A stretch of DNA of 64,000 bases from Phaeosaccion multiseriatum (lineage: Eukaryota > Protista > Ochrophyta, other classes): the NCBI GenBank assembly GCA_965112735.1, contig OZ218953.1:2294001-2358000 (forward strand), written 5' to 3'. Numbering within the stretch: position 1 is the stretch's first letter; every line of letters starts with the position of its first letter. The notes beneath the pieces are model-generated. The model saw nothing but the letters and a program-made list of their open reading frames with translations, did no database searches and had not been told where the DNA came from. The position numbers were made by a program, and so were the translations under genes. Positions 12,201 through 64,000 of the stretch are shown piece after piece.

Positions 12201-12378
12201 CCTCCCTATGGATGGCACTCTGCGGCGCTCTACCACCATCCCATTGCCCCAGCATCCCATGGCCCGGAGCCCCTGCTGTCCGACCGCCCCAGAGTTGAAC
12301 CTCAACTTACCTTCTTGGTCACAAGGAAGCCTCCCGCGATGTTCACAGCGGAAACCATCGTGGCAGCCGCACCAATCG

Positions 12379-12433
<55 letters not shown>

Positions 12434-13696
12434 GAGTAAAAGCTCTCGCCATCTGCCCCTCTGTGTGCCGCCAACCAAGCAACAAGCAACAAGCACCAAG
12501 CACCGACCAACCAACCAGCCCAATGACAAATACCAACCCAATGACAAATACCAACCCACGAACCAGCCAACCAGCCAACAAACCTGCGAAGCGTTGGTGG
12601 GTACGAGGCCCGGCCCCACCAGGTACATACCGCCCACAGCGGTGAGGCCGGAAATGGCGTTGGTCACGGCCATGAGGGGGGAGTGCAGCGCGTGAGTCAC
12701 ACCGCTCACCACCTGGGGGGGAGGAATGGGGGGATGGCAGTGGACGGTTGGGACAGGGGGGAGGGAGACAAGTTTGTTTAGTAGGGGTGGTGTGCCGCTT
12801 CACGTGTGCATGAGAGCCTCCCAGCACGGCTCAGGACAGGTCCGGAGAGGGCGCTGACGACGCAGGTGGAGGAACCAATAATACCATCCCCTCCTCCCAA
12901 CCCTTTCCTCTGCCCTCTGCTGCCATCCCTGCCCTCCCTCCCTCCCTCCCTCCCTCGTTACTCGCCTGCCAGCCCACCATGCCGGAGAGGGCGAATGTGT
13001 TGAGCATGTTGCTAAAGGCGGGGTTTGGGGAGGCCGTCCCTAACCACACCACCCCTGCACTGCCCAGTGAAGCCTTTAGAGCCCGCTGCATGAACTCCTG
13101 CAAAGGGGGGGGGGGGGGAGGGGTGGCAGGGGATGGCAGATGGCAGCAGACGATAAGCATAAGCAGAGGGCCAAAGAGAGCGGACGTAAGCGAGCCCATC
13201 TGTGACCGTAACCCCAACCCCAAAGCATCCCTTCCCCGCCCCTCCTCCTCGTCTTCTGCCCCTCTTCTCCTTCTGTCCCTCGTCCTCCTCCTCCTCCTCC
13301 TCCCCCTCAACCCCCTCCTCATCCTCGTCCTCATCCTCGTCGTCATGCTCCTCCTCCTCCTCCTCCTCCTCCTCCTCCTCCTCCTCCTCCTGCTGCTGCT
13401 GCTGCTGCTGCATCCCCTCTCTCTCCTCTTCTTCTGCCCCTCTCCCCCTTTTGTCCCTCGTCCTCCTCCTCCTCCTCCTCCTCCTCCTCCTCGTCCTCCT
13501 CCTCCTCCTCGTCCTCCTCCTCCTCCTCCTCCTCCTCCTCAACCCCCTCCTCATCCTCGTCCTCATCCTCGTCGTCATGCTCGTTCTCCTCCTCCTCCTC
13601 CTCCTCCTCCTCCTCCTCCTCCTCCTCCTCCTCCTCCTCCTCCTCCTCATCCTGACCCCCCTCCTCGTCGTCGTCCTCGTCCTCCTGCTACTAACT

Positions 13697-13742
<46 letters not shown>

Positions 13743-16700
13743 AATGCTCATCCCCCTCGTCCTCCACCACGGCACCTGCTTAGGGTCCAGCACGACAGCC
13801 TCGACGCTCTCCACCTCCTCCTCCTCCTCCTTGACGGGGGCCACAGGGGGCGGGGTTGGTGCAGGTGCGGGCCACCTCAGTTCCCCCTGGTCCACAACCA
13901 GCACGCCTCTGAAGCGCAAAGTGTAGGTGGTTGGGAGGGTCGGTCGGTCAGTCTGGAGTTGGTTGTACCAACATGACAACACATACTACCACTTCCTTTC
14001 ACACAATACTTACTACTACATACGTACATACATACGTACACACATACAGATACATACATTGAAAGACAGACAGATCGATACATAACACAGATACTAAATA
14101 TGTATATATACACATCATCAACAGACCTGGTGGCAACATCGCTGTAGTCAATCTGAAACGCCTCCTTGTCGTCCGTGCTGAAGGGCCCCATGCTGGTGAG
14201 TAGCTTGGTGATATTGTTGGAGTACAGCGTGGACGCGGTGGAGGGCAGGCGGCTCGCCAGGTCGGTGTAACCGATGCACGTTACGCCATTGTCTGTCAGC
14301 ACCACCTCGTCCTGAGGGAGGGTGTGAGGAGGAGGGCGTGATGAGGGGTGCGGTGGGGGACATTTGCATCTGAAACGACAAGGCGCCAAACATAGCCAAC
14401 ACAATGCACCCACCCACCCACCCATCCACGCACCCACCCACCCACCCATCCACGCACCCACCCACCCAACCATCCACGCACCCACCCGTCCTCTGCCATC
14501 CCTTCCCTGTGCGCTCACCTTCCGTGTGGTGGCAATGTTCCCTCCCGTCTCAGCGGCAAGGTCGACGGTTACGCTGCCTGCCTTCATGCTCCCCACCATG
14601 TCCTCCGTGATGAGTTTGGGGGCAGGCTTGCCGGGGATGAGCGCCGTAGTGATGACGATGTCAGCCTCTCTGCGAGAGAGGAGGGGGATGATGGGGTATA
14701 GGCATATGAGCATAGGCCGGGCGCTTTGAGCGTGACTACTCACCATCACCATTGGTCCTTTTCCTCCTCCCCCTCATGCTCCTCTCCTCTTTCATTGCCT
14801 CTCTCCCCGCCCGGCGGGAACCCCCGCCCGGCGGGACCCCCCTCCCCTCATCCCCACCCACCACCCGTCCCGCCGCAACAAGCCCCACTCACTTGGTCTC
14901 AGCGGCGAGCATCTTGGCGGCCGCTTCCTTCCATCCGTCGCTCATCTCCTTGGCATACCCGCCTGCTCCAGCCCCGTCCTCCTCAAAGTTGACTTCCAAG
15001 AACTCGCCCCCCATGCTCTCCACCTGCTCCTTGGCCGCTGCACGGGCGTCGAAGCCCTGTTGGTTGACACATTGCAATGCCAAAGCAACGCCAATGCAAC
15101 GCCAATGCAGTTGAGAGAGGGGAGGGGGGCGACGGAATGCACCGGCACCAGGCAGAGGCGTATGGGCAGAGGGAGAGAGCGATGCTCATGCAGAAGCACA
15201 CCAGGGCAACTCTCTCTCTCCCGTCAACCCATACACCTGTAGCCCTCCCCCCAGCACAGCCTGACTCCCTCCCCCGCCCTCCCAGCAACAGCCCCAGCAA
15301 TAGGCCCAGCAACAGCCCCTGCGAAAGTGAATAGCCCCACCGCCCACCCCCTCCTCCCCTCCTCCCACCCCCCCCCTTCCTTCCCCCTTACCTTAACGAT
15401 GGCCCCCAAGTTCTTGGCTGCCTGTATGGCTGCGAGGCCCGCCACACCTGCTCCACACACGAGCACTCGGGCAGGGGGGATGCGGCCAGCGGCGGTGATC
15501 TGCCCGGCGAAGAAGCGCTGAAAGTGGTGCGACGCCTCCACCACGGCACGGTAGCCGGCAATGTTGGCCTATGTACAGGGGGTGGATGGCAGGGAAAACA
15601 CGTACAGTACAGGCATATGGGCAGGGCAGGGTAGAGCAGAGCAGAAGAGAGGAGAGAGGAGCGGAGAGGAGGGGAGGGGAGAGGAGAGAAATGAGAGCAC
15701 AGTCAGGGCAAAGCAGGGCAGCCGGACCACCACCCGCTGATGAAGGGACCAAAGCCCAAAGCCCGTGCAACTCGTACAGGACCGTCACCGTCCCGCCACA
15801 GCCCCCACGCACTAACATGCTCGATCAGTGGAATGCTTTGCTCGCGTTTGGTCGACAGTAAGGTTGTTTTCACTTTCACTTTCACTTTCAGTTGATCAGC
15901 CCCACGCACGCACGCACGCACACACGCACGCACTCACCTGACTGGAGAGCGCGTCAAAGGCCTGCCCGCGGCTCAGCGTCCTCGGCAGACAGTCCATGGC
16001 CAGCGCTGTGGCCCCTTGGCTCTGCAGCTGCTTCACCAGACGGGCGCTCTGATGGATGCCAGGTGTCGGGACCAAGGGATAAAAAGGGAGTTGTCAGGAC
16101 AATGACGGAAACAGGGATCACAAGACCAAGGAGGTGGGGTGGCGGGGTTGTGAGTGTATATATATAGAGTGTATATATATAAAAGAGAGAGAGAGAGAGA
16201 GGGAAGAGGAGAAGGGAAGCCGACAGCGATGAATGGGCTTGGCTCGGCGGTAGGTAGTCGAAGGCGCAAAGGAGTCAAAACAAAGCAAGGGAACGCCATC
16301 ATATTGGAGACACCCATCGAACTCATTGTCTTATCTGTCTATAGTCCCTCCTCCGCCCCACCCTTTCAACCCGACGTCCGTCCGTACCTGCCCCGGCCAC
16401 AGCAGAGACAGAACGGCCCTGTCCTCCAGCATGCCAACCTCAATGTCCGTGGGTTGCCGGACCTGGGGGGATGGATGGAGGCGTATGGATACATAGATGG
16501 AAGACGACCCACAGTGCATTTCGGCTGAGTTGGGGCGGCCACTAGAGAGATGGGGCTTAGAGAGAGGAGGACCCTTCTCTACATTCGGAGACTGAGAAGG
16601 ACTACTCGAGGTTGAAGGAAGGGAGAGAGAGAGAGAGCGTGGGAGGCAGGCACCCCATGTGCTTTGGCCTCGCTTTGTGCTGTGCCCATATGCCTGTCCC

Positions 16701-24054: not shown

Positions 24055-24437
24055 CTGCGATTTCGCGGTTGATTGGCACTTTTGACGCCCCGTGAATTCT
24101 TTTTGACGCCAAATGACGATTGCTTTGACGACGTTTGACGACGTTTGAACCCCTTTTTTACCCCCTTTAAAGCCCTGTTTTACACACTTTGACGCCCTTT
24201 GACGCACTTTGACGCCCTTTTGTCTTAATTCGCGTTAATTTTCGCGATTGTTTTTTAGTTGATTTTTTTTAGACGAAAATAAGGCGAAATAAGATAAAAG
24301 GGCGTCAAAGGGCGGCAAACAGGGCTTTAAATGGGGTAAAAAAGGGGTTCAATCGTCGTCAAACGTCGTCAAAGTAATCGTCATTTGGCGTCAAAAAAAA
24401 ATCACGTCAAAAGTGCCAATCAACCGCGAAATCACAG
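24055..24437. mobile_element. AT-rich foldback MITE, about 383 bp, TA-flanked (Tc1/mariner-like)
   Basis: TIR ctgcgatttcgcggttgattggcacttttgacg ... cgtcaaaagtgccaatcaaccgcgaaatcacag; inverted homology extends well over 100 bp inward. TA at 24053-24054 and 24438-24439. Many internal TTTGACG repeats. Confidence 0.88.
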
Positions 24438-24538: not shown

Positions 24539-25972
24539 ATGGCTCGAGCCGCAGCGGTCGCACGCAATGCCGCAGTGGCAGCGATGTGCTTGGTGGGGGG
24601 CTCCTTGCCACCACCAAGCCTGGCCTTCACAGGACAGGCGGTCTCCTCTTTCTCAAAATCCTCCGCTTCCTCTCTCTCACAATCCTCCTCCATTTCCTCT
24701 CTGTCGACCTTCTCCCCGTCGTCGTCGCTGCTCTCCCCTGTAAGCGGAGGAAGAGACGATGCCAGTCTTTTGAGGAGCAGCAGCAGTAGCAGCAGCACCC
24801 CTGAGCCGGAAACCGAGGAGAAGAAGCCGCACATCGCTGTCGTGGGTGGGGGCTGGGGTGGATGGGGAGCCGCCAAGGCTCTTTGCGAGAATGGATGCAA
24901 GGTAATTGAAGTCTGATTCTACATCGCTTAGCGTGTGTACTCTCTTGTGCTGCTGATTCGTGCCTGCCTCGTGAAAGAGCAATTTTTATTAGCCGCTCTC
25001 TTACGCCACCACCACAGCTGGATATCTTCCTATGGGCGTACCAGCTTGTGGTTCCAATGCGTCTGACGGGAGAGCCGCTGGACACATGTTTTTGCTCACT
25101 ATCAGGTGACGCTATTCGACGGCCTTCCCGACCCTACTGGAGAAAAACCATACCTCACGCCCACCGGCAAGCCCTTCGAGGCAGGCACGAGAGGCTTCTG
25201 GAAGGTAAATTGGGACTTACCATTAGCGTGGGGACATGGTGAGGGCGGGAGGAGGTTATTGGTCACTTGTGCACTTAGCAGGCAGTTGCTCACCCCCTAT
25301 CACCTGGTTCCTTGCTTTGTCCCCTCCCCCTCTCCTCCTCTCCTCCTCCTCCTCCTCCTCCTCCTCCTCCTCCTCCTCCTCCTCCTCCTCCTCCTCCTCC
25401 TCCTCCTCCTCCTCCTCCTCCTCCTCCTCCTCCTCCTCCTCCTCCTCCTCCTCCTCCTTCTCCTCCTCCTCTTCCTCTTCCTTCTCCTCCTCCTTCCCCT
25501 CCTCCTCTTCCTCTTCCTTCTCCTCCTCCTCCTCCTCCTCCTTCTCCTCCTCCTCCTCCTCCTCCTCCTCCTCCTCCTCCTCCTCCTCCTCCTCCTCCTC
25601 CTCCTCTTCCTCTTCCTTCTCCTCCTCCTCCTTCCCCTCCTCCTCTTCCTCTCCTCCTCCTCTTCTCCTCCTCCTCCTCCTCCTCCTCCTCCTCCTCCTC
25701 CTCCTCCTCCTCCTCCTCCTCTTTTCCCGTACCACCTACTCCTGCACCTTCCGCTACCGACAGGACTATCCGAACATCGAAGACTTGGTGCGCGAGCTGG
25801 GCATGTCTGAGGACGACGTCTTCTCTCCCTTTACCAACTCCTCCTTCTACAGCCCTGAGGGGATAGAAGCGACCGCACCGGTGTTCAGCAGCAGCAACTT
25901 CCCCGAGCTCCCCTCGCCCCTGGGCCAAATTGCGGTGAGAGAAACCATCATGATCATGTCATCATGATGATC

Positions 25973-31138: not shown

Positions 31139-31921
31139 CTACAGCCTCGGCTGCGTCATGTTGGCTCCTCCCTCCTCGCACACCCTCCGCATGTCCAGCA
31201 GCGCCTCTTGCAGATGATGGCACAGCCTCTCCGGCCAGCGCTCTTGCCCCGCTAGCCCCGTCCGGGCAGCCACCTGAAAGTGGAAACTCCTCTGCTTGAC
31301 CATGTACGCCAGCCCCACGCCATGCCGCACCACCTCCCCAAAGCCCCACCCATCAAACAACTCGTGGGAAATGTTAGAGGTGGACACTGCCCACGTCTTG
31401 CTCTCTGAAAAGGCCGGATCTGCAAAGAGCGCTGGCAGCTTGTCGGGGCTTGCCTCCCCGTCCTTTAGCATGAGCTTGAGCCCGAACAGGTGGCGGTCGC
31501 AGTCCTTCCCCTGGGCCGCTTCCCTGGCCAGAGTGGAGTGGCGCTTGGTCGCGTCTCGGAGGAGTCGGAGGCGGTGTTGCTGCTCCTCGTGCTCCTCCTC
31601 CTCCTGTGGCTCGGAGTTGTCTCGCATACGCTTGACCCAGGCCACCGATGAGTCTGTAACGGCTCGGATGCAGGCGGTGCGGCCGTGGAGGTAGATGCTC
31701 ACTTGAGCGGGCTCGTAGGTGGGTCTCACGCACCCACACATGCTGGCGGGGAGGGAAGGGGAGGAAGGTCCACAGGGGAGAGGGGCAAAAGAGGGATTGG
31801 GGATGGGGAAGGGGGGGGGGGGGGGGCTCAGGACAATGTTCTATCGCCAATGGTACGTCCACGCACACAAGCAAAAGCACGCGCGCACACACACACATGC
31901 ACACACACACGCACACACACG

Positions 31922-31985
<64 letters not shown>

Positions 31986-33229
31986 CCCCCCAACACCCAC
32001 CTGTAGTAGGCCAGCTGCAGGGCCTGCTGCGCGAATGCGTCGGGCGACATGCCCCACTTCTTCACCTCCGCCGCTCCGTACGCCACAAACTCCAGCGCCT
32101 CGAAGCCGTGGGCTGCCACCTCCGACTGGTGCGCGGCCCAGGCCAGGGAAACGTCACGCATAGAGGTGGCGGGCAGCACCAGGTCCAGACATCGGGCAGG
32201 AGCGGCGGCCACACGCACGGGAGGGTGTGATGCGGCTTGCCCCCCGGGGTGGCCTGCCGCCAGCTCTCCGACCCCGGGGGTGAAGGTGTACGAGGAGGAG
32301 GTTGGAGGTCTCCGGGCTGTCATGGAGTGGCGCAGCATGAAGCTGGCGAGGCGGAGGGAGGGAGTGCCGTCCATCATGGCATGTTCTCCGATGAGACCGG
32401 CCTTGGCGTTAGCAAACACCACCAGTTGAATGGGCTGCCGGAGGGGGGCGGGGCGGGGTGGGACGGGCAAGAAGTATGAATGAATGAGAGGGAGAGGAGA
32501 GGAGAGGAGAGAGAGGGAGAGAGAGAGATACACACAGAAAAAGACGGAGAGAGAGGAGGGAGGATGGAGGAGCGTAAGGGGGCTCGACGCATCACGATAC
32601 TCCAGAGGGCCCAGGGGGGGGGCATGAAACAGCCCTTCACATCGTGGACTGTCGAAATCTCCCCCCTCTCTCTCTCTTCTCTCCCTCTCAGTCCGTTCGT
32701 CCATCTCCCTCCCTCCCTCTCTCTTCCCGCCCTCCCTCCCCCTCCACCTCTCTCTCTCTCTCCCTCCCCCCCCCCCCCTTTTCTCTCTGTCTCTCACCTT
32801 GTCCCACCAGCGGTTGTTGCCATCCCCATGCAACAGCTGCCGCCCCACCTCCTTCTTGGTCACGGGGCGGGCCTCGTCCAGACACAGCACCAACGCCGCG
32901 CTCTCGATCCTCTCCAGCCTCTCTCTGTTGCTGCCCCGCCCCACCCCTTCTCCCCTTCCCTCTCCGCCGTCGTCGGACACACCCAGCAGCCGGGCCCGTG
33001 CATCGGCCCAGCTGTCTCTATCCCACGCCGTGAGGACACCCACCGGGGGAGTGCCGTCTCGAACGGGCCCACTGCCGGCCAGCACCGCCTGCAGCTGGGC
33101 CTCGAGAGTGTGCACGGAGGCGGGGGAGCCGTCGGCGTCGGTCACGGTGAGCTCGAAGAGGCGGTTGGCGACGGTTACGACAATGTGTTGGTGTAGGCTG
33201 AGTGAGGGGGTTGAGTGAGTGAGGAGAGG

Positions 33230-33291
<62 letters not shown>

Positions 33292-34286
33292 TCAGGGAGA
33301 ACACAGAGTCAAAGGCAAAAGCCTTTGTGAAAAACAGGAGAGACAAGAGGCGGGATTGACCTTTGGCAAGGGCGGTCCGGTCCAGTTGGCCAATGCATGC
33401 ACTGCCATCCGGCAGCAGCGTGGGTCACATCTGACTGACTGACTGACTGACTGACCTCGGGTCGTGCAGGGCGTAGGTGTCCTGCTCTCTGCGGGGGATA
33501 CGACACGTGTTAAACATGTACTTGTAGGGCGTTGTGCACAGCGGCTTGCGCTGCTTACCCCGCCCCACCCCGTCCGGAGGGAGTCTGCCTGACACCACCT
33601 GCTGCCGGAACAGAAGGGCGGCGTGGACGAGGCTAGCTGCGCGCCCGCATTGGGACCTGATGTTGTGTTTGGGGGGGGGATTGTGCATTCATTGCATGGG
33701 GGCAGGGGTTGAGGTGGCGGTGGTGGGGCAGTCGTCTTGCATGGGGAAAAGGGGGGAGGAGGAAGAGGGCACTGTCGACGTGAGAGCAGAGCACTTGTCC
33801 TACTTGTATAGAACAATGTACACGCTGCACGGACGAGGATACTGACTGACCTTTGCGCGGGAACAGGACTGTCCTTGAAGTGGTAGAAGTAGCTGATGTT
33901 GATAGGCACCGGGTCCCTCACCTGCGGCCGAGAGAGAGCGTGTGCGTGATTTTGCCGACGGGGGTGGGGGTTGGATTTAATGACGCAGTCTCGAATCGAT
34001 AAGGAAGGTGCCTACTCATATGCCCCAACCACCAACCCCCCCACCTGCAGATAGCCCAACTGGTTCCACCATAGCGCCAGATAGGAGGAGTCCCTCCCGT
34101 GCTCCTTGGCGCGTTGCAAGAGGCGGCGCTGGAGGACGGGCCCCATGCCTCCGGGCTGCAGGAAGTCCCGCACAGCAGCTTCGGTGCGCCGATACTGCTC
34201 CGTTGTGCTGCTTCCCCCCTCGTCCCTGTCGTGCTGAGTGAGGAGCGCGTGTACGCTGGCCAGGTACTTCAGCGAGCAAGGAGTGC

Positions 34287-41000: not shown

Positions 41001-41406
41001 ACTCACCCCTTCCGCTGCCCTGCCCCTTGCTGCCCCTACCCCTGCCCCCCTTGCCTCGGCCCCTGCCCTCCCCTCCTTAGACTCGGACATTTGGTCATCA
41101 CGCCCGCACGCTGTTTGCCGAAACCGCACGCATCTGGGAGGGCCTTGGAGAGAGAGGCAAGGCGGCAGACGCCCTCGCTCTGGCAGCCAAAGCCGCGGAG
41201 TGCGTGCATGGTCCGTACAGCCTGCAGACGGGAAGGGCATACAAGCGGCTCGGGGCGGCCCGGGAGGCCCAGGGGGGCGACTGGGCGAGGGCCAGAGAGG
41301 CATACTTGAGAGCCCGAGGGGTGTTCGCGGACCACTTTGGCAAGAGCGACCAGCGCGCAAAGCAGATGGCAGCTTGTGCCACGGCCTGTCATAAGCAGGT
41401 GGGTGC

Positions 41407-49990: not shown

Positions 49991-51225
49991 GCTGCTGCCT
50001 GTTGTCGGCCTAGCTCGTAAGAGGAAGCCCTCACTACCTGTCTGGCACCGTGCGGCCGCCACCTCACGCATCAGGCTGCTATGTGAGCTGCAAGGCGGGC
50101 CTGCATGGGTCTTTCTCCGAGCAGATTTCAACCTGAGTGCGCTACAACAAGTGGCGAACGACACAGGCCTCGGGAGGTACTTTTCCACGGGAGCCCCGTC
50201 GCTCCCTACCTAGACACAAAGTGCCTCGGGAGCAAAGAGCAGACCCTGGCTGCTCCGCGACAGCCGACACGACGAACGGCTTCGTCACCGACCCATAGGG
50301 GGGGTGGGTGGTGGGCTCTGCCCGCTGAACCTGCCTGCCCTACTCCTTCCCCTCGACCGCGCTCTGGCTCCAACTCGCTGGGAGTGATGGTTGACTGTCC
50401 TTGAGCAGAGGTGTGGAGTGGCCGACTGCCCTGCTGCATCCCCCCCCCCCACCGGAGGGAGCCCGCGGAGCGGCCGAGAGCGAGAGAGAGAGGGCGAGCC
50501 CTGTGGCTAGACCATGGGTTCCAGGCGAGGTTTCTCTGGCGCCTGGCTTCTGGACCGTAGCCGCCTCCTGGCTTCGGGGCTTCTGGCCGCAGGCCAGACG
50601 GTCTGGCTTGCTTCTGGGCACTGGCTTCGTTCTCAGGCTCTGGCTTCCCTTAATGGGGGGGGCGGGGGGGGGGCTCTCGCTACTGTCCTGCTGGCTTCAG
50701 CAGGCCCAGCCCCTGGCTTGGCTTCTTGCTTTCGGCCGCAGGCCGCCTCTCGGCCGCTTCCCTTTTTACTGACTGGCTGAGAATGCCGTTTTCGAACAGA
50801 GCGAGTTTGCGAGGAGTCATAGTCTCGATAAACGTGTTTTCGGGCAGGGAGAGACAAGACACCCGGGGGGAGGGGGGGCGCGCAAGGGGTTGAGGCTTGG
50901 GGATAGGTGTACCACCGGGGTTAGAGGGAGTGAGTCGGATACGTGGGGCCGGATAGGCGTGGTCATTGTTGTTGGATGAAGAGGAGGAGGAGGCGTCGCG
51001 AGAGCAGCGGTGCCAGAGTAGTCGCAAGGGTAGAAGAGCTCATCGCGACGAGGAAGACAGCAAGGGTAGAGTTCACAGTCGGCTCCAGACTGGCCTAGAA
51101 GCCTAGGCCTAGAGACGAAATTCGGCCGGCCTAGGGGGGCCGCAGGCCCCCGGCCTAGGCCTAGAGGGGGCCGCAGGTCCCCGGCCTAGGCCTATTTTTG
51201 GCGCAGCCCCCCCGGCCTAGGCCTA

Positions 51226-51415
51226 TCGACCCTGGGCAAGATTACGGTGTGCGCCGGCCGTAACCAGTAATCAGCCCCCGGCCGGCGCAAAATCAGTAAT
51301 CAGGTCGGCTGGTCACCGGCTGTAAGCAACCAGACCGGCTGGCGCCGGTCGTAATCAGTAATCAGGCCGGCTGCGCCGGCCGTAATCAGAATCAGATGAT
51401 CTTGTCCAGGGTCGA
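51226..51415. mobile_element. MITE B copy 1 (190 bp), nested in element A
   Basis: TIR tcgaccctgggcaagat / atcttgtccagggtcga (16/17 match); internal TAATCAG repeats and GCCGGC palindromes. Confidence 0.88.
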
Positions 51416-53020
51416 CTCCCTCCCTCCCTCCCTCCCTCCCTCCCTCCCTCTCTCCCTCCCTCCCTCCCTCCCTCCCTCCTCCCTCCCTCCCTCCCTCCCT
51501 CCCTCCCTCCCTCCCTCCCTCCCTCCCTCCCTCCCTCCCTCCCTCCCTCCCTCCCTCCCTCCCTCCCTCCCTCCCTCCCTCCCTCCCTCCCTCCCTCCCT
51601 CCCTCCCTCCCTCCCTCCCTCCCTCCCTCCCTCCCTCCCTCCCTCCCTCCCTCCCTCCCTCCCTCCCTCCCTCCCTCCCTCCCTCCCTCCCTCCCTCCCT
51701 CCCTCCCTCCCTCCCTCCCTCCCTCCCTCCCTCCCTCCCTCCCTCCCTCCCTCCCTCCCTCCCTCCCTCCCTCCCTCCCTCCCTCCCTCCCTCCCTCCCT
51801 CCCTCCCTCCCTCCCTCCCTCCCTCCCTCCCTCCCTCCCTCCCTCCCTCCCTCCCTCCCTCCCTCCCTCCCTCCCTCCCTCCCTCCCTCCCTCCCTCCCT
51901 CCCTCCCTCCCTCCCTCCCTCCCTCCCTCCCTCCCTCCCTCCCTCCCTCCCTCCCTCCCTCCCTCCCTCCCTCCCTCCCTCCCTCCCTCCCTCCCTCCCT
52001 CCCTCCCTCCCTCCCTCCCTCCCTCCCTCCCTCCCTCCCTCCCTCCCTCCCTCCCTCCCTCCCTCCCTCCCTCCCTCCCTCCCTCCCTCCCTCCCTCCCT
52101 CCCTCCCTCCCTCCCTCCCTCCCTCCCTCCCTCCCTCCCTCCCTCCCTCCCTCCCTCCCTCCCTCCCTCCCTCCCTCCCTCCCTCCCTCCCTCCCTCCCT
52201 CCCTCCCTCCCTCCCTCCCTCCCTCCCTCCCTCCCTCCCTCCCTCCCTCCCTCCCTCCCTCCCTCCCTCCCTCCCTCCCTCCCTCCCTCCCTCCCTCCCT
52301 CCCTCCCTCCCTCCCTCCCTCCCTCCCTCCCTCCCTCCCTCCCTCCCTCCCTCCCTCCCTCCCTCCCTCCCTCCCTCCCTCCCTCCCTCCCTCCCTCCCT
52401 CCCTCCCTCCCTCCCTCCCTCCCTCCCTCCCTCCCTCCCTCCCTCCCTCCCTCCCTCCCTCCCTCCCTCCCTCCCTCCCTCCCTCCCTCCCTCCCTCCCT
52501 CCCTCCCTCCCTCCCTCCCTCCCTCCCTCCCTCCCTCCCTCCCTCCCTCCCTCCCTCCCTCCCTCCCTCCCTCCCTCCCTCCCTCCCTCCCTCCCTCCCT
52601 CCCTCCCTCCCTCCCTCCCTCCCTCCCTCCCTCCCTCCCTCCCTCCCTCCCTCCCTCCCTCCCTCCCTCCCTCCCTCCCTCCCTCCCTCCCTCCCTCCCT
52701 CCCTCCCTCCCTCCCTCCCTCCCTCCCTCCCTCCCTCCCTCCCTCCCTCCCTCCCTCCCTCCCTCCCTCCCTCCCTCCCTCCCTCCCTCCCTCCCTCCCT
52801 CCCTCCCTCCCTCCCTCCCTCCCTCCCTCCCTCCCTCCCTCCCTCCCTCCCTCCCTCCCTCCCTCCCTCCCTCCCTCCCTCCCTCCCTCCCTCCCTCCCT
52901 CCCTCCCTCCCTCCCTCCCTCCCTCCCTCCCTCCCTCCCTCCCTCCCTCCCTCCCTCCCTCCCTCCCTCCCTCCCTCCCTCCCTCCCTCCCTCCCTCCCT
53001 CCCTCCCTCCCTCCCTCCCT
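51416..53020. repeat. 1.6-kb nearly perfect (CCCT)n array between the two MITE B copies
   Basis: Direct observation; only a couple of interruptions near the left end. Confidence 0.97.
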
Positions 53021-53166
53021 TCGACCCTGGAGAAGATTACGGTGTGCGCCGGCCGTAATCAGTATTCAGCCCCCGGCTGGCGCATAATCAGTACTCAGGC
53101 CGGCTGGCGCCGGTCATAATCAGTAATCAGGCCGGCTGCGCCGGCCGTAATTACTAATCAGATAGA
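53021..53166. mobile_element. MITE B copy 2, same orientation, right TIR deleted
   Basis: Begins tcgaccctggagaagattacggtgtgcgccggccgtaa like copy 1; has several substitutions and lacks one ~30-bp internal unit. Confidence 0.85.
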
Positions 53167-53478
53167 GGCCTAGGCCTAGAACCGCCGGCCTAGGGAGAAA
53201 AAATGGCCGGCCTAGAGCGGCCAACGGCCGCCGGCCTAGGCCTAGAGCGGGCGTAGGCCGCTCGGCCTAGGGCCTAGAGCATAGGCTTCTAGGCCAGTCT
53301 GGAGCCGATCACAGCAGCAGAGTGTGAAGAGTGAGAGGAGCGACCCGCCCGGCCGCTTTACGGTTTCGCACCTCTTTCCCCCCTTTTTTTTGGACAGACC
53401 TGAAACTGACTGAAGAAGGAATTTTTGGCCCACCTGGAAACAGGAGAGAGAGTTTAGTGAAAGCAGCAAAAAATAAGT

Positions 53479-56400
53479 CACCCATACATTGGATGCAATG
53501 CTGCGGGACTTGGGACGGAATGTAGATTCTGCGGCTTCAGCATCTTTGATCCTTGCCCGGCAGCTGACGCATCGACGGGAGCCCCCTCCGCGGCACCTCC
53601 TTCTCCTGCGTCACCGACAAGCCCTCCAAGCAGCATCGCCACCTCCCCTTCTTCTCCGGCACCAACGCCTCCGAGCGACGCAGGAGGAGGAGACAGTTGC
53701 TCCGTACTCTGTCGGCAGGGGAATCCGGCGGAGCCTTGCTTCTTCGACCCCTCCTGTGCAAGTGGCGGTAAGTGACGTCATCACTACGCCAGCACCACCA
53801 GCCCAGCCATCCGCCAGTCACTGCCTGCCTGCCGGCCTGCTGCTGCCCTTGCTTCGCTCCTTCTCCCTCTAAGGCCTGACCTCCCCCCCCTCCCCGCCCC
53901 TCCTCCCCTATCCTGCTGCTCTCACTCTGCCTAAATGGGCATCCACAGGCATCGGGTGCAATGCACGGGGTTTGGGAAGGGATTGTAGGTTTTGTGGCTT
54001 CGGCATCTTTGATCCGTGCCCAGACGCCTCATCTTCGACCTCCCCTCCGACGCCTACTTCCGTGCCCGCCGCACCCACCACGCCTTCTGCTCCTGCGCCG
54101 ACAAGAGCCCCAAGCAATGCAGGAGGAGCAGGAGGAGTCGACGACGCCTGCTCCGCCCGCTGTCACTCCAGTGAACCATGCTTCCTGGATCCTCTGTGCC
54201 TGGACTGCGCTAGAGACCCTCGCTCTTGTAAGTAGTAGATTGTACGCCGCCGCCAGCCATCCTGATTTGTGTGCCTTCCTCACCTCGCCTTGCTTGCTTC
54301 GTTTTCATCATGTCAACGAGCGGCCGCTGCTCACCTCCTCCTCTCTCATCATCATCGTCATGTACCCCCCCCCCCCCTACCCGCATTCTCTTGATTCTCT
54401 TCAATGTCCATAGGCAACGGGTGCAATGCACGAGGATTGGGACAGGAGTGTAGATTCTGTAATTTCTCCTTCTTCCCGGACTGCCCAGTGGTCGCCAACA
54501 CGGTGACCCCGACATCGCCACCGACGCCAGCTCCAGTGGCCATCCCACCCACTCAGGTTTGAAGCGTATCCCCTCTCCGCCCTGGGCTCAGGTCTTCCTT
54601 GCCTTGCTTGCCTTCTTTCCTCTCTCCTCTTGTCTCCCATATAGCTACCTTCTTCCACTTCAACATCTTTAATCCTGGCCCGGCAGACAGTCCTCCTCTC
54701 CTTCCTTGGTACTTATTACCTCTCTCCTTCTTCTTTCGCCTCGGCTCCTCTCCATTCCTCTCCCCCTCTTGGTGTGCCTCTGACTGGGAAATGCATTATG
54801 CATCCATCATACTCCCATCGTCTGCTCTCCCGCTGGCTGTCCTGCCTGGGCTGGTGGTGCATCGAATCTCCCTCAGGCCCCAACCACCGTCACTCCAACC
54901 ACCACCCCTCCGTCTCCGGCACCAGCAGCAGCAAGCGCCGACACCACGACTGCACCCGCCCCCGCGCCCTCGACTTCAGTTCCGACTGCTGCTCCGACTG
55001 CGGTAGGTGACATGACGCGGTGCGCTTTTTTCCTTTTCTCTCTCCTCTTGTCTCCCGTATAATTATACCCTCCACACACCAGGATCTTTGATCCTTGCCC
55101 GGCAGACGACGATTCCTCCTCTCATGCATGTATTCATTCCGTGGTACGTTTTCTTGCTGTGCTTCTGACGCGTAATGCACGCATCCATCATAGCGAGGAG
55201 GGGAGGGGAGCGAGTGCCTCGTGGAGGGGGCGGAGTGCGCGGCATTATTCTTCGGCGTATCAGCTTGCTGCGGTGACGTGAGCGTCTTTGTTGGAGGTGC
55301 CGGCGGCTTCTGCATCGGCGGCACTTGCTCGGCGAGTCTTGGCCAAGAAGGGGAGAGCTGCGCGGGAGATGTAAAAAACAACTCCTGTGCCCAAGGCCTC
55401 TCTTGCATGGAGGGTAGCTGTGCTGCACCAGGAGGTATTGGTGAAAAGTGCGAGCTGGGCGACTTGTCCTTGTTGAACAATTCGTGCGAGGGAGAACTTC
55501 TCTGCATCGAGGGGACGTGCAGCGAGTGCCTCGTGGAGGGGGCGGAGTGCTCGGCATCCTTCTTCGGTGTATCAGCTTGCTGCGGTGACGTGAGCGTCTT
55601 TGTTGGAGGTGCCGGCGGCTTCTGCATCGGCGACACCACTAGCAACGCCCCCTTCATTGAACTTGGCACTTGCTCGCCGAGTCTTGGCCAAGTAGGGGAC
55701 AGCTGCACGGGAACCGGGACTTTAAACACCAACTCCTGTGTCCAAGGCCTCTTTTGCGTGGAGGGTAGCTGTGCTGAACCAGGAGGTGTTGGTGGCAAGT
55801 GCGAGGCGGACAATTTTAACGTCTTTACCAATACGTGCGAGGGAGAACTTCTCTGCATCGAGGGGACGTGCAGCGACAGCGAGTGCCTCTTGGAGGGCGC
55901 GGAGTGCTCGGCATTCCTCTTCTCCATCACAACTTGCTGTGGTGACGAGAACTTCGCTGGAGGTACCGGCGGCTTCTGCATCGAGGAAGACCTTGGCACG
56001 TCCGACGGCAATGGCGACACCACTGGCAACGGCCCCTTCAGTGGCAGTTGCTCGGCGAGTCGTGGCCAAAACGGGGAGCGCTGCTCGGGAGATGGACGTG
56101 AGATTAACACCAACTCCTGTGTCCAAGGCCTCTTTTGCGTGGAGGGTAGCTGCGCTGCACCAGGAGGTATTGGTGAGAAGTGCGAGCTGAACGAATTTGA
56201 TTTTAACAGTTCGTGCGAGGGGGAACTTTTCTGCATCGAGGGGACGTGCAGCGAGTGCCTCGTGGAGGGGGCGGAGTGCTCGGCATCCTTCTTCGGCGCA
56301 TCAGGTTGCTGCGGTGAGGTGAGCATCTTTGGAGGTGCCGGCGGCTTCTGCATCGGCGACACCACTAGCAACGGCCCCTTCATTGGCACTTGCTCGGCGA

Positions 56401-56606
56401 GTCTTGGCCAAGAAGAGGAGAGCTGCGCGGGAGATTTACGCAACAACTCCTGTGCCCCAGGCCTCTTTTGCATGGAGGGTAGCTGCGCTGCACCAGGAGT
56501 TGTTGGTGACAAGTGCGAGGTGACAACTGGCCGATTTGCGCCGATCAGTTCGTGCGAGGAAGGACTTTTCTGCCTCGAGGGGACGTGCTGCTGCGATTCT
56601 AGCTAG
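53479..56606 (+). CDS. Extracellular-type Cys-rich repeat protein with Pro/Thr/Ser linkers; 5'-truncated, possibly a pseudogene
   Basis: Three GCNAxGLGxxCRFCxFxxFxxCP modules on duplicated phase-1 exons, mucin-like linkers, then ORF 55221-56606 with four 14-Cys tandem units. No start codon, signal peptide or acceptor found for the first exon. Confidence 0.6.
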
Positions 56607-57120
56607 GAGGGGAGAGCAGAGTGCTCAGCCCTCTCCTGCGGAGCAGGTCAGCTTGCTGTGGTGATGTCACCACCCGGAGAGGTGGCGGCTTCAGTGTCGA
56701 CGAGGAGGACTTTCGCACGTCCAGCCACTTCCAATGGCAACGGGGAGCGTAAGGGAAGGCAGTAGACGTCTGGGATCGACTGGGAGGGACTGGCTTTGAA
56801 CGCGAGGAGTGAGCGGGAACGTGTCCAGCGTCATAGAGCAGGGGTAGGTAGCAGATGTAGGGGCGGCGGGGCGGTGTATGAGGTGGTTGAGAGGATCCAG
56901 CGAGGGAGGGGAGCGAAAAAAACTCTCCCACTTTAAGGTGCCATCCAATTTGGATGAAAATTTGGAAATTCTCCCACTCTTAAGGTGCCATCCAATTCTT
57001 TTTTTGGATCCGGCACAAAGAAAGCCTTGAAGAAAGGCAAAAGAGAGAGGAAGAGGAGAGCCTTCGGCTTCTCCGTTTGCTGTGCGTAGCAGCACGTGCA
57101 ACATGCGGTGGAGAATATGC

Positions 57121-60100
57121 ATGTTCACGGCCTCCATCATTGCATCAGCCCTCGCGACAGCCTTGGGCCTGCGGCCTCTCGCGCCACAGCCTTCTCTCAA
57201 GCATAGCGGCGGCGGCAGCAACAGCAGCAGCAGCCGCAGCCGCAGCAGCAGCACCAAGACTCGTAACTCAGGCACTTCCTGCTCGGGCTTCCCCCATCCC
57301 TGCGCCAGGCCCGCACTCGCCCCCCTCCCACGTCCCCAGGGGCTGGTGGTGCTGAGCAGCAGCGCGGACGGAGATGGTCCGGAGGGCACGCAGAAGGAGG
57401 ACCGCGTGCCAGAAAAAGGTCCACGCCGAGAACTCGTTCTGCAACGGCGTGTTCGAGGAGTGGCCAAGTTTCTGAGGAACAGGTTTCAACAAAAACAGCA
57501 GCTGCAGCAGCCGGAGGATACGACGCAGCAACAAGAAGAACCCCAGATGCCACAACAGCAACAGCTATCACAGGAAGAAGTACGACTGCAACAAGAGCAA
57601 GTACGAGAACAGGTGTATCAGCTACGTCAGCAGCAACAAGAAGTAGAGCAGGAGCAGCAGCAGCAGCAGCAGCAGCAGGAGAAGAGGTCATGGGCTATTG
57701 GTTCATCCTCCCCAGCGGCAAAATATCAAGAGTACGACAACTTACTTCGGCAAGGTATGAAGGGATCGAAGGCGCGGGAGGATGCGGAGATACTGGGGAG
57801 CCCAGAGGCACAGGCAGCACCCGCCCAGGCGGCAGCACCAGCAAGCCAAGCCTCAGCCGCAGCAACGCCGCAAGAAGAAGGTGCAGCTGCTGAGCGTGCG
57901 GCGCTGGAACTAAAGGAACTGAGGGTGGCAGCGGAGGAGAAGGAGAGGGAGATCCAGGCCGCGAAGATGGCAGCGGAGGAGAAGGAGAGGGAAGTCCAGG
58001 CCGCGAAGATGGCAGCGGAGGAGAAAGAGAGGGAGATCCTTGCTGTGAAAATGGCAGCGGAGGAGAAAGAGAAGGAAATAAATGCCGTAAAGAAGTCGGC
58101 GGCCTTGAAGGAGAAGGAAATCACTGTCGTGAGACAGACAGCGGCGGAGAAGGAGAGGGAAGCCCAGGCCGCGAAGATGGCAGCGGAGGAGAAGGAGAAG
58201 GAAATCCAGGCGGTGAAAAAGGCAGCGGAGGAGAAAGAGAGGGAAATACAGGCCGCGAAGATGGAAGCGCTGGATAGGCAGAGGGAGATCAATGCAGCGA
58301 GAAAGGCAGCGGAGGAGAAGGAGAAGGAAATCCAGGCTGCGAAGGTGGCGGCGGTGGAGAAGGAGAGGAAATTTCAGGGCGTGAGACAGTCAGCGGTGGA
58401 GAAGGAGAGGGCCATCAGGGCCGCAAAGTTGGCAGCGGAGGAGAAGGAGAGGGAAATCCAGGCCGTGAAAATGGCCGCAGAGGAGAAGGAGAAGCAAGTC
58501 ATGGCCGCGAAGATGTCAGCGGTGGAGAAGCAGAGGGAATTCCAGGGCGTCAAGATGGCAGCGGTGGAGAAGGAGAGGGAATTCCAGGCCAAGCTCGCGC
58601 GCTTGAAGACGGCGTGGGACAAGCAGAAGGAGGAGATGGAGGCCAGCTTCGCCGAGCAGAAAGCGGCCGCCTGGGAGCGGGAGAAGAAAGACAGGGCGGA
58701 GGCGCTGGCCCGGCAGGAGGCCGCAGCCTTGGAGAAGGAGAGGGTGGAGAAGGAAGCCTTCCTGGCCCAGCAGAGTGCCGCCGAGGCAAAGGCCGCTGCT
58801 TTGCAGAAGGAGAAGGAAAAGGCGGAAGCCACACTCGCCCGGCAGGTGGCGGCTCTCCGCATCTCCGAAAGGGACAAGGCGGAGAAGATGGAGAGTATCC
58901 GCGCCTACGAAGAGGACAGAGAGCAGCGCGAGATTGCTGTGCGGCAACAGATGGCGACGCTGGAGCTCAAACAGCAGGAGGAGAGGGCTTCTCTGAGCAA
59001 GGCCAAGGAGGAAATGCAGGCTCGCCTCGAGGCTACGGAGAGTAAGAAGGCAGAGCTGGAGAAGAAGAAGGCAGAGCTGGAGGAGACAGTGAGTTCCCTT
59101 TCGGATGCCAAGGGGAGCCTGGAGGTGGAAGGGAGGTCGAAGCAAGCCGCTCTCCAACAGGAGCTCGGCGAGATTCGCCTGGAGCTGGAGGCTGAGAAGT
59201 CCAAGTGGATTCAAGAGAAGGCCAATTCTGCGGCCAAACAGGAGCTCCTGCAGTCCCAAGTCGCCAAGCTGCAGGTCACGCTGACAGACACTCAGCAGGC
59301 CATGGAGACACAGCAGAACGAGGCCCTTGCTATTGAAACGGCGCGCCTGGAGATCCGCACGCAGCAGCAGGAGGAGCTTGCCAAAGGTCTGGAGCATCTG
59401 CGCATCTCCGAACAAGAGCAGGAGAAGCGAGAGACCGATCTGAAGCAGCAGATGGCGAAGCTGGGGCAGGAGGTGGAGGCGGAGAGGGTGGATCTGCGCA
59501 AGGCGAAGGAGGACATGCAGGCTCGCCTTGATGCGGCGGAGAAGAAGAAGGCAGAGCTGGAGAAGGAAGTGAGTGCCATGGCAGAGGCCAAGGGGAGTGT
59601 GGAGATGGAGGGGAAGTCGAAGCAAGCCGCTCTCCAACAGGAGCTCAGTGAGGTTCGCGTCAAACTGGAGGAGGAGAAGTCCCAATGGGTTCAAGAGAAG
59701 GCGGCATCCGCGACCAAGCAGGGGCAACTGGAGGCCCAAGTGGCGCAGTTGCAGACCAAGATGACCGAGGCGCAGCAGGCGATGGAGCTCCAGCAGAGCG
59801 AAGCCGTTGCGGCCGAGACGGCGCGCCTGCTCCTCCGCACGCAGCAGCAGGAGGAGGTCTCCAAGGTGCTTGACGCCAAGACGGCAGAGGTGGAAGAGAT
59901 GCAGGCGGCTTTCGCGGAGAAGGACAGGTTGCGAGAGAAGGCGGCGGTAGACCTGCGAGACCAAATGGCCAATTTGCAGGTCCTCATGGACAAGAGCAGG
60001 ACGCGCTCGCAGAAGACCATCGACGACTTGACGGAACAGGTGAGGGAGGAGTTGCGTCAGTGGCAGTGGCAGTGCCAAAAGTGGCTGGTGTCAGGAAGTA

Positions 60101-61014
60101 GGGGAAGGACGGACGAAAGCAAGCAAGGAAGATGGAAGGAAAGGGTTCTCGTTTCATTTCACTTCACTCAGTTCAGTTGCTCATCGGTCTATGAGAGCGG
60201 CGGTGGCGTGGGGGGTGCAGGCTCTTTCTACTTCGACTCTCACTGGATCCCCGACACTTACGTATCTTGGTTTCTGTCTGTCTTGGACTCTGATCTCTCA
60301 TTGTGCTCTACAGGTGAAGGAGGTGGAGGCATTAAAGGGCAACGAGGTGGCCTTAGAAGGGACCCAGAAGGAGCTCGAAGAGGCACGTCAGAAGGAGGAG
60401 AGTCTGCGGGAAGAGGTGGCGGAGGCGGAGCAGAGAGAGGAAGAGCTACGCGCCTCCATGGCAGAGCTTCAGACCCAGGCGGCGGGCATGGCATTGAGCG
60501 TGGAGGAGAAAGAGCAGCAGCTGAGTGAGGTGGCGGCGGAGCTGGAGAGGACGAAGGACCAGGTCAAGCAGATGGGTTCCGTCGGGGTGGAGCTGGTGTC
60601 CGCCCGGGAGGAAGTGGCGAGTGCTGGTGTGGAGATTAGCGCACTCAAGATGGAGAAGGCCAAGCTGATTGCCGAGCTGACGGAGGTAACGGCCATGCAA
60701 GAGAGGGCGGTGGAGACGCTGTGGGCCATTGAGCGCGACAAGGAGGAGAAGGACTACCTTGGTATCCAGCTCAAGCGTGAGAACACCATGCTACAAGAGC
60801 TCATGGCCAAAAACAGAAAGCGCTTCGAGAGGAGGAGGGCGGAGGTGGAGGCCAAGATGGAGGAGATGAAGGAGAACGAGGCCGCCATCGTGCAAAAGAC
60901 CACCGAGAGGGTCACTAAGCAGGTGCGCACAGAGAGAGAGAGTGTGTGTGTGTGTGGATGTGTGTGGAGAGGGTCACCATGCAGGTCGGCTAGATACAGA
61001 GTGAGAGTGAAAGA

Positions 61015-61068
<54 letters not shown>

Positions 61069-63257
61069 GCGTGCTCTCTGCTTGTCGTTGCTCTCGTTTC
61101 AGAACGAGCGAGATCACTCGTGCCCCGATGGAATGCCCATGGAATGCCCATGGAATGGGTTCCTCTAGTGCTCTTCCCCGCCTCCCCCCCCATCTTTCGC
61201 CGCAGGAAGCCAGGCAAAGAACCAGTCTGCCGGGTCCGACTCATCCATACCCACACAACCACACCGGCCCGTTCCCTCATGTCTTCACAGGTGAAGAGAG
61301 AGCTCGAGTCACAGGGTCAGCTGGCCGACGTGCAGCGTGACAGAGTCATGGAAACGACCGAGAAGCAGGCGCAGGGGTGGCTGTCAGAGCTCACCAAGGC
61401 CAGGCAGGAGTCTGAGGCCGCCAAGGACAGCAGCGGACAGCTCGAGAGGAGCCTTAAGGCAGAGAAGGCAAGGTTCTCGGCGCTGGAGGGGGCCCTAGCG
61501 CAGCTTGGAGTGGATCGGAGTGCACTTGCTGCGGTGACTGCGGGTGGGGCGGCGACGCCCGAGCGGGAGGCCCTGCAAAAGAAGTTCATCGCGGCCTTGG
61601 GCGCCGCCAATGCCAGTGCCACCACCGATGCTGCGGTAGCGGCTGCGACCAGTGCTGCCGCTGCTGCCAGTGAGCTGCAGCAGGAGCAACAGCGGCAGCA
61701 GCGGCTACAGGAGGATAAGGAGAGGGAGAAGGAGCAGCAAAGTCTGCAGCGGCAGCGGAAGGAGGAGAAGGAGCAGCAGCTACAGCTGCAGCGGCGGCAG
61801 GAGGAGAGGGAGAAGGAGATGGCCCGCACGGTGCAGGCGCTCAAGAAGGACCTCGACCGAGTCACGGGGGACCTCGAGGTGGAGCGACTCGAGAGGTCGG
61901 GCGGACAGCAGCAGATGAATGATGTGCAGGTGAGGAGGGGAGGGAGGGGGGAGGAGGAGGAGGAAGAGGAGGAGCTGTATGCCTGCCCATTTGCCTGTCG
62001 TCAATATTGCCTGTCTGCATGTCTGCCTGTCTACCCGTCTCTGCCTTGTTCGGGGTGGCTTTGGTGTGTGTATCCGTGGCGCGCACCTCCATGGCTTGTG
62101 CTTTGGGAGAATGTTGTGCTTTGGGATGCGAGTAGTACCGCTGGAGAACCAACGTGCATAGATCGATAGAACCCACGGGTGCTTTTTCCCTTTTCATCTC
62201 CTCTGTACAATGTACTTCTTCCGCCGGGTAACCCTCCTGCCTCTGCTTCCTGACCATTGTCGTGACTACTGATGCCGCTGTCGAGCAGAGCGATCTTGCG
62301 GAGACTCGTGGCCAGCTGGAGAAGGCCAAACAGATGCTCAAGAACGCGGGCGTCAACTTCGGCAACCAGCTCAGGGATATGGGCAGGTGAGGGAGTTGAG
62401 TGAGTGAGCATGGAAAAGAACGGGACGCCAAAGAAGCGAAGCAAGCGGTATCTCTTTTTCGTTTTCTTCGATCGGTCGTTTCGACCCCTTGCACCGCCAC
62501 CGCCCTCCCGTCCCGTCCCCTCCCCTCCCCCGACTCCGGCTCCATTCGCTCAATTGCTGCCCCTTGCTGACTTGCCCTCCACTGTCATCCCCCGCCGTCT
62601 GTGGGCAGGTCCAGGCACATGTTCGAGAAGCCCAGCAGTGACAAGCCCAGCACCGGCGGCTCAGAGGGCGCAGGGGCGACGAGCCCTCCGGCTGCGATGA
62701 CACCTCCGGCTGCTCCAAGGGAAGCGGCAAGGGTGGTCACCGCTCCTGCTGCGGCAAGGGTGGGCACCGCTACGGCTGCGGCTAAGGAGGGGGCAGGTGC
62801 GACTATGCGCCCGATGGTACCTCCGGCTGGTGCTACGGGGGGGGCAGGGGTGAGCAACCCTCCGGTTGCTGCTGCTGCAAGGGTGGTCACCTCTCCGGGT
62901 GTTGCTGCTGCAGGGGCTGTGCCGACTGCGGCTGCGGTTACGGAGGACGCAGGGGCGACCACCACCCCTCCAACTGATCGCTACGCACGCGCGTCCCACA
63001 ACCCCAAGAGGGAGAAGAAGAAGGCGCGGAAGGAGGACGAGGAGATGGGAAAGCTGGACATTAAGAGGGAGGCAAGGAAGGAGGCGGAAGAGGCCAGGGG
63101 GGGGCAGGTAGAAGAGGGAAAGAAGGAGACGGTAACGGCGGAGCAGGGGACCAAGGAGGTGAAGGCCCAAGTAGAAACGGTCAAGGCGGAGAAGCGGAGC
63201 TGGGGGAAGGGGCAAGTGAAGGGGACTAAGGAGGAGAAGGGGCAAGAAAAGAAATGA
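57121..63257 (+). CDS. Large coiled-coil protein with N-terminal signal/transit-like sequence and 14-aa tandem repeats, multi-exon
   Basis: MFTASIIASALATALG|LRP then a Ser/Arg-rich region; AAEEKEREIQAAKM-type repeats at 57931-58590; an internal duplication of roughly 180 aa at 58860-59850; further exons near 60314-60922, 61291-61930, 62289-62387 and 62610-63257. Confidence 0.75.
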
Positions 63258-63585
63258 GCGAGGCTGACCCCGATAGGAAGGAGCAAGGCCCTGAAGCTAA
63301 ATAGAAGCGGGGGCCAATGGAGGAGACTTGGGCGAAGCACCACTCTCCCTGTTGGCTTAGCTTAGCTCAACTTAGCTCAGCTCGATGAAAACAACGTCTG
63401 CAGTTGCATTGTCTCTCAGGCAGATTGGGGCCCTGAGGGGTTAGGGTAGGTTTAAGCATGGTTTACGGATGGGCATGATGGAATCACCGCCAACAGCCAA
63501 CGAAGGGGAAGTGGCATATACATGTGATGCGTGATCAAATTTTGGGTGCTTGAGTAGTTTAGTTCCCCCCAATTAAAAGGGTTTG

Positions 63586-63802
63586 TCGGCCCCTGACATG
63601 CTTCTGAGACAGGCCAGCCCAGAAGCAGGAAGTAGGCCGGCTGGCGCCGGCCAGAAGCAGGAAGCACCCTTGGCCCTCATCATTGCCTTATTATATGGCT
63701 TTCCCCCAGAACCTGGAACCTGCCTGGCCGGCTGGCGCCGGCCAAAAGCCAGCCGGCCAAAAGCAGGAAGCAGGGTCGCCTCAGAAGCATGTCAGGGGCC
63801 GA
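63586..63802. mobile_element. MITE C (217 bp) with 6-bp TSD (GGTTTG)
   Basis: Perfect 23-bp TIR TCGGCCCCTGACATGCTTCTGAG; GGTTTG at 63580-63585 and 63803-63808; internal AAGCAGG repeats and GCCGGCTGGCGCCGGC palindromes. Confidence 0.93.
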
Positions 63803-64000
63803 GGTTTGAGCTGCGTCGAGAGGATCTCGAGCGTGAAGGAAGTTAAGATGCAATTTCAGTTTCAAGTCTCGACTCTCCGGATACTGGGCAGTGTGGAGGG
63901 GAGAGGCAGGAGTGAGAAGAAAAGAGCGCACACACACACACACACACACAGTGGGAGGAGGGGAGGAAGGGGGCGAAGATCCACAGAGGCGGGTCAAAAG

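Follow-up and report, generated by a model that had tools for sequence, protein, structure and literature searches.

The 64-kb window studied here, by which we mean the whole stretch analysed (positions 2,294,001 to 2,358,000 of the forward strand of contig OZ218953.1, in the Phaeosaccion multiseriatum assembly GCA_965112735.1), is eukaryotic DNA with a G+C content of ~60% and contains three repeat-built elements bounded by terminal inverted repeats (TIRs), designated A, B and C. A and C are each enclosed by an exact target-site duplication (TSD) of 6 bp, and B is nested in A together with a second copy of its family, B', and a long microsatellite. A first-pass annotation, made from the sequence alone, had singled out A, B and C as three families of miniature inverted-repeat transposable elements (MITEs) with TCG...CGA termini, and as the signature of a possibly unclassified group of DNA transposons. 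We describe these elements and their kinship, and weigh what kind of enzyme may have mobilized them.

Element A (51079-53308, plus strand) spans 2230 bp and is delimited by TIRs (51079-51105 and 53282-53308) that are perfect over 27 nt, or cover 31 nt with 2 mismatches. Its left flank (51073-51078) reads TCACAG, and exactly the same hexamer follows its right end (53309-53314); this duplication can be extended in neither direction and cannot be re-phased to 2, 3, 8 or 9 bp. The length of A as a whole is due only to its nested content: B plus B' account for 335 bp and a (CTCC)n microsatellite for 1605 bp, the arms of A itself amounting to 147 and 143 bp. At 2.2 kb, A as it stands is thus not the miniature element that had been announced. 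The two arms were compared apart, the nested insert being left in place. In the left arm (51079-51225, plus strand), the TIR is followed by 31-bp units consisting of a palindrome and a doubled GCCTAG, for which Tandem Repeats Finder (TRF) returned a period of 31 and 3.2 copies; in the right arm (53166-53308, plus strand), 30-bp units precede the TIR. The palindromes of these units vary in sequence with their stems kept. GGCCTAG is present seven times in the left arm and eight times in the right one, i.e., 15 of its 17 occurrences in the window are located within the arms of A.

Element C (63586-63802, plus strand) measures 217 bp, its TIRs (63586-63608 and 63780-63802) match at 23 of 23 positions, and it is enclosed by GGTTTG on the left (63580-63585) and by an exact second copy of this hexamer on the right (63803-63808), here again with no possible extension and no possible re-phasing to 2, 3, 8 or 9 bp. 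Its interior is composed of units in which a palindrome, shared with B, is followed by a doubled heptamer, and of a unique centre of ~60 bp. As a single strand, C folds with an energy of -69.2 kcal/mol (z -7.7). The 72-codon open reading frame (ORF) that runs over C has no relatives, none of the proteins in the collections having a word in common with it. For both A and C, the extents and the TSDs put forward by the first-pass annotation are therefore confirmed.

Regarding B (51226-51415, plus strand), the picture is more intricate. This 190-bp element consists of five ~31-bp units, folds as a single strand with -51.9 kcal/mol (z -6.4) and possesses 17-nt TIRs (51226-51242 and 51399-51415) matching at 16 of 17 positions. 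While its extent was correctly predicted, the TSD GGCCTA proposed for it was not: this hexamer is found on the left flank only, the right flank being CTCCCT, which is the beginning of the (CTCC)n array. GGCCTA recurs 3 bases past the end of B', where it does not form a TSD of B. The array itself (51416-53020, plus strand) extends over 1605 bp with 399 perfect units (401.5 copies and 99% match according to TRF) and separates B from B' (53021-53165, plus strand), which lies beyond it in the same orientation as B. Identity between B' and B is 91% along a stretch of 87 nt and 98% along one of 52 nt; B' has the left TIR, with 1 mismatch, and lacks a right TIR as well as one of the internal units. 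B, the array and B' are all located inside A, and all 10 TAATCAG heptamers of the window fall in B or B'. Of note, the junction hexamers at both edges of the array are CTCCCT, a coincidence that has about a one-in-four chance of occurring with an array of period 4.

Comparison of the three elements reveals that they have much in common. Indeed, all seven ends begin with TCG, as had been claimed for the termini, and columns 1-3, 5, 7, 10 and 15 are common to all seven, the first 12 bases of A and C being identical at 10 positions. Moreover, a single unit plan is followed in A, B and C, in which ~31 bp comprise a 16-17-nt GC-rich palindrome and then a doubled 6-7-mer. Between B and C, the kinship extends to the units themselves: a 15-nt palindromic scaffold is identical in both, matched four times in the window where 0.25 matches would be expected, which substantiates the common scaffold noticed earlier, and the heptamers of the two elements diverge at two positions, the same ones in either half of the doublet, B having T where C has G. 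On the basis of these shared ends, of the common unit build and of the homology between the B and C units, A, B and C are relatives rather than unrelated elements starting alike, and this relatedness is well supported by the sequence. Each element has in addition its own internal motif, a proposal borne out by the distribution of TAATCAG and GGCCTAG described above. Finally, with their intact TSDs and perfect TIRs, A and C are consistent with insertions of no great age, in line with the recent activity that had been suggested.

To which extent could such structures arise by chance? In dinucleotide shuffles of the window, a 10-nt TIR combined with a 6-bp TSD appeared in 19 of 100 cases, and this combination alone is therefore not rare, so that the weight of the case rests on the long perfect TIRs. 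When perfect outermost inverted pairs of at least 16 nt were considered within 6 kb, the real window yielded three loci only, namely A and C themselves and an AT-rich element that is not related to them, whereas 100 shuffled windows yielded 12 pairs in total. With long perfect TIRs beyond chance and exact 6-bp repeats on both sides, A and C are real TIR elements with 6-bp TSDs.

Two further candidates were set aside. The inverted pair at 24958-25190, perfect over 14 nt and starting with TCG, has neither a TSD nor internal units and was taken as a chance occurrence, about three 14-nt pairs being expected per shuffled window. Likewise, a match at 41056 carries a mismatch and has no partner.

The search for additional copies and for a mobilizing enzyme gave little. 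By blastn, no further copy of A, B or C was recovered from the window besides the truncated B'; the three "families" of the first-pass annotation are consequently represented by one A, one C and B with its truncated copy. Beyond the window, scans with exact TIRs gave no match in viral contigs, a single match in metagenomes, which lies inside a bacterial coding region and is devoid of an inverted partner, and nothing in prokaryote genomes but one chance match in a Pseudomonas contig; degenerate search patterns were of 22 nt at most. No transposase domain was detected by Pfam in any window ORF of at least 150 aa, the size range to which all statements on coding capacity refer here, and the earlier claim that the window has no transposase holds in this range. 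The Pfam matches obtained were to PNTB, AlaDh_PNT_C, Carn_acyltransf, GSHPx, B-box and TPR, with weak ones to Tudor and Atrophin.

Altogether, A, B/B' and C are very probably non-autonomous class II DNA transposons (TIR, cut-and-paste type) forming three related, lineage-specific families. What carries this reading is the combination of long perfect TIRs, exact and mutually unrelated 6-bp repeats flanking A and C, copies of B nested in A and the lack of coding capacity, together with the strong hairpin potential of B and C, which is typical of MITEs. Indeed, with MITEs containing internal tandem repeats they share a short and non-coding sequence (217 bp for C, 190 bp for B, 147 and 143 bp for the arms of A, without a Pfam domain), TIRs (27/27 in A, 23/23 in C and 16/17 in B), a TSD at A and C, strong hairpin potential, an interior of tandem units and mutual nesting. 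In contrast, the ~31-bp build of a palindrome and a doubled 6-7-mer, as well as the TCG start, were not found in a literature text search. As for the TSD length, it is exactly 6 bp at A and at C, two cases that do not establish a fixed length, and there is no TSD at B.

In a plausible scenario, the transposase that inserted each element acted in trans and came from an autonomous element lying out of view. This putative enzyme would make target cuts staggered by 6 bases, and repair of the gaps would yield the TSD. As a common cleavage and recognition end, it might use the outermost ~12 bases, which A and C have alike and to which those of B are similar, whereas specific binding would probably take place at the motif that adjoins the TIR and differs from family to family. 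Tandem expansions of a subterminal unit, whose ~31-bp period is close to three helical turns, would be the simplest account of the long motif arrays running in one direction.

Several observations weigh against this explanation. No transposase is linked to A, B or C. A single A and a single C are present in the window, and neither a multi-copy status nor a consistent TSD length is shown by them. B has no TSD, and there is no worked-out history for the order in which B, the microsatellite and B' follow each other. Furthermore, the heptamer arrays of B and C all point one way along the element, with none on the opposite strand, the only inverted copy being that inside the left TIR; they are not mirrored at both ends, unlike classic subterminal binding sites. 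This weakens the idea of family-specific binding motifs advanced by the first-pass annotation, and the arrays look less like paired binding sites than like a tandem expansion of the unit that adjoins the right end. What survives of this idea is the TIR-proximal heptamer copy, which may still be a binding site.

Could the elements be no transposons at all, and represent instead inverted repeats formed by chance, satellite DNA with a structure of its own or an error of assembly? The sequence environment gives some grounds for asking, as simple repeats abound in it to an extreme degree (122 TRF rows), short TIRs with 6-bp duplications do occur in the shuffled windows, and an assembler could have mis-sized the perfect 1.6-kb microsatellite in A. 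However, perfect inverted ends of 27 and 23 nt far exceed what the shuffles produce, A and C are each bounded by exact 6-mers of unrelated sequence, and B-family sequence is present twice with a divergence of 2-9%; this possibility is thus exceedingly improbable. Assuming real transposons, the 6-bp TSD points to a short-TSD hAT lineage or to an integrase-like enzyme of the IS3EU/GingerRoot type, without determining the superfamily. TIRs as short as those seen here (17-27 nt) are usual in the hAT superfamily, as are short subterminal repeats, and because the TIRs of A, B and C are short and subterminal repeats are present, a hAT-like enzyme is slightly favoured. Concerning the end letters, hAT termini are not known to begin with TCG. 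Although the usual hAT TSD is 8 bp, lineages with 5-, 6- and 7-bp TSDs (hAT5, hAT6 and hAT7) also occur (PMC12730594); hAT6 (Kapitonov and Jurka 2007, as cited in PMC12730594) sits within a lineage to which Blackjack and further hATs of animals belong. The 6 bp of A and C agree with the TSD length of hAT6. Against this stands the apparent origin of the window, a GC-rich eukaryote of a seemingly poorly sampled lineage. That A, B and C are non-autonomous members of a hAT lineage with 6-bp TSDs, like hAT6, is hence a tentative assignment, possible but doubtful. It is also unlikely that they owe their mobility to a DDE enzyme of integrase type, such as those of IS3EU/GingerRoot or Polinton, or to the kind of enzyme that leaves 6-bp TSDs and unusual termini in green algae. 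Admittedly, IS3EU/GingerRoot and Polinton usually have TSDs of 6 bp (PMC10045372; PMC8232023), Zymoseptoria REP9 being another such case in the IS3EU group (PMC8232023), and like these A and C have TIRs. Nevertheless, complete IS3EU families always end in TA..TA, the termini of IS3EU/GingerRoot occasionally being TG..CA (PMC10045372), and in rust fungi the IS3EU termini are TAYGG..CCRTA with TIRs >30 bp (PMC12730594), which does not fit TCG..CGA ends with TIRs of 17-27 nt. The window has no autonomous copy and, among its ORFs of at least 150 aa, no integrase-like gene. Similarly, Polinton-like elements have TSDs of 5-6 bp but are 14-40 kb in size, carry polymerase, integrase and capsid genes and have TIRs that extend over hundreds of bp (PMC12220804), whereas the elements described here measure 190-2230 bp and encode no such domains, setting them apart from Polinton/Maverick and polinton-like viruses. 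As to the green-algal case, orphan 6-bp signatures do exist: a 617-kb giant endogenous virus of Chlamydomonas has kilobase-long TIRs, ACC-GGT termini matching no known integrase family and a 6-bp TSD, with no enzyme identified (10.1101/2024.09.03.611062). The orphan signature is what A and C have in common with it; the kilobase TIRs and other end letters differ, B and C are only 190-217 bp long, and no link between them is shown.

Other superfamilies were compared as well. The TSDs of Tc1/mariner (TA), PIF/Harbinger (0-4 bp) and CACTA-type (CMCT; 2-5 bp) elements (PMC10045372, PMC12730594) differ from the 6 bp of A and C, which are not re-phasable. Dada elements have TSDs of 6-7 bp, like A and C, but have no TIRs and insert in small RNA genes (PMC3706591); A, B and C do have TIRs, and the window gave 0 Rfam hits and 0 tRNA hits. 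For MuDR/Mutator, with a TSD usually of about 9 bp, the 6 bp of A and C fall inside the 4-10 bp range reported for IS256/MuDR (PMC10045372). The list of usual TSD lengths from which the first-pass annotation argued is broadly right; however, these lengths vary within superfamilies (5-8 bp in hAT, 4-10 bp in MuDR) and are for this reason not a safe superfamily marker. TCG..CGA ends combined with a 6-bp TSD are therefore unusual without being diagnostic of any superfamily, and only a transposase can place the group in one. Could the superfamily itself be undescribed? In the literature compared, no described group combines a 6-bp TSD with TCG termini, and a text search of the literature retrieved neither the TIR and unit strings in a transposon context nor any TCG..CGA-style notation, Repbase and Dfam lying outside this search. 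Such an absence from text is weak evidence, and known superfamilies vary internally in end letters as they do in TSD length. Moreover, most orphan MITEs find their place in a known superfamily in the end, upon discovery of an autonomous partner, which also counts against novelty. We thus consider it improbable that A, B and C derive from an undescribed superfamily of DNA transposons. The same low credence applies to the broader proposal that elements with TCG..CGA ends and 6-bp TSDs are the non-autonomous offspring of an undescribed transposase or integrase lineage, be it a new superfamily or an enzyme of the green-algal type.

In the surroundings of A, B and C, simple repeats are extremely abundant, tri- and tetranucleotide arrays of the (CCT)n, (CCTC)n and (AGGA)n types being very dense from 1 to 64000 and many of them exceeding 200 bp, and the skew profile exhibits long blocks in which one strand is purine- or pyrimidine-rich. 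The genes contain introns, and exons were searched apart, without joined spliced gene models. On the minus strand, a gene for NAD(P) transhydrogenase occupies 9697-14752, its alpha part preceding the beta part; its introns are of the GT-AG type, ~300 nt long, of low complexity and pyrimidine- or purine-rich, with GTGAG, GTGCG or GTGGG as donors. A conserved exon of a carnitine acyltransferase (Carn_acyltransf) follows at 31841-33346, also on the minus strand, and an exon of a glutathione peroxidase (GSHPx) is located at ~43 kb. Among 5.8 billion Logan proteins, the closest relatives of the carnitine acyltransferase exon are 36-45% identical, none exceeding 45%, and the best match comes from a contig whose DNA, with 51% GC, is unrelated. 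Ten window ORFs have no record in a collection of 15 billion proteins, and one further ORF is likewise without a record. Judging from these sequences, the source lineage of the window seems poorly sampled, and neither intron donors nor GC3 pointed to a particular lineage.

Between A and C, an open frame of 1148 codons (57082-60528) encodes a coiled-coil-like product without a Pfam domain, in which a 42-bp unit (14 residues) is repeated ~16 times at 57926-58590. At 24055-24437 lies the AT-rich element mentioned above, a 383-bp element of the foldback type unrelated to A, B and C. Its arms of ~150 nt are ~90% complementary and packed with TTTGACG-like repeats. TA is present at both flanks and, TA being palindromic, a TA duplication is indistinguishable from a 2-nt extension of the arms.

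At present, A, B and C are a matter of ordinary repeat annotation, namely a small group of nested elements, MITE-like and intergenic. They are real, related and MITE-like; the claim of an undescribed superfamily, to which we give little credence, is neither supported nor excluded by them. Should their signature hold genome-wide, the combination of end letters, 6-bp scar and unit build would provide a handle for finding the autonomous partner, the transposase of which would reveal either a known superfamily with a new variant of TSD and terminus, or a new superfamily. Regardless of the enzyme, the units of B and C, with their identical scaffold and their two heptamer differences, represent a tidy natural case of motif divergence between sister families. 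If an undescribed lineage were indeed at work, these modular units would record a shift in DNA-binding specificity between sister families, from T to G at two heptamer positions.

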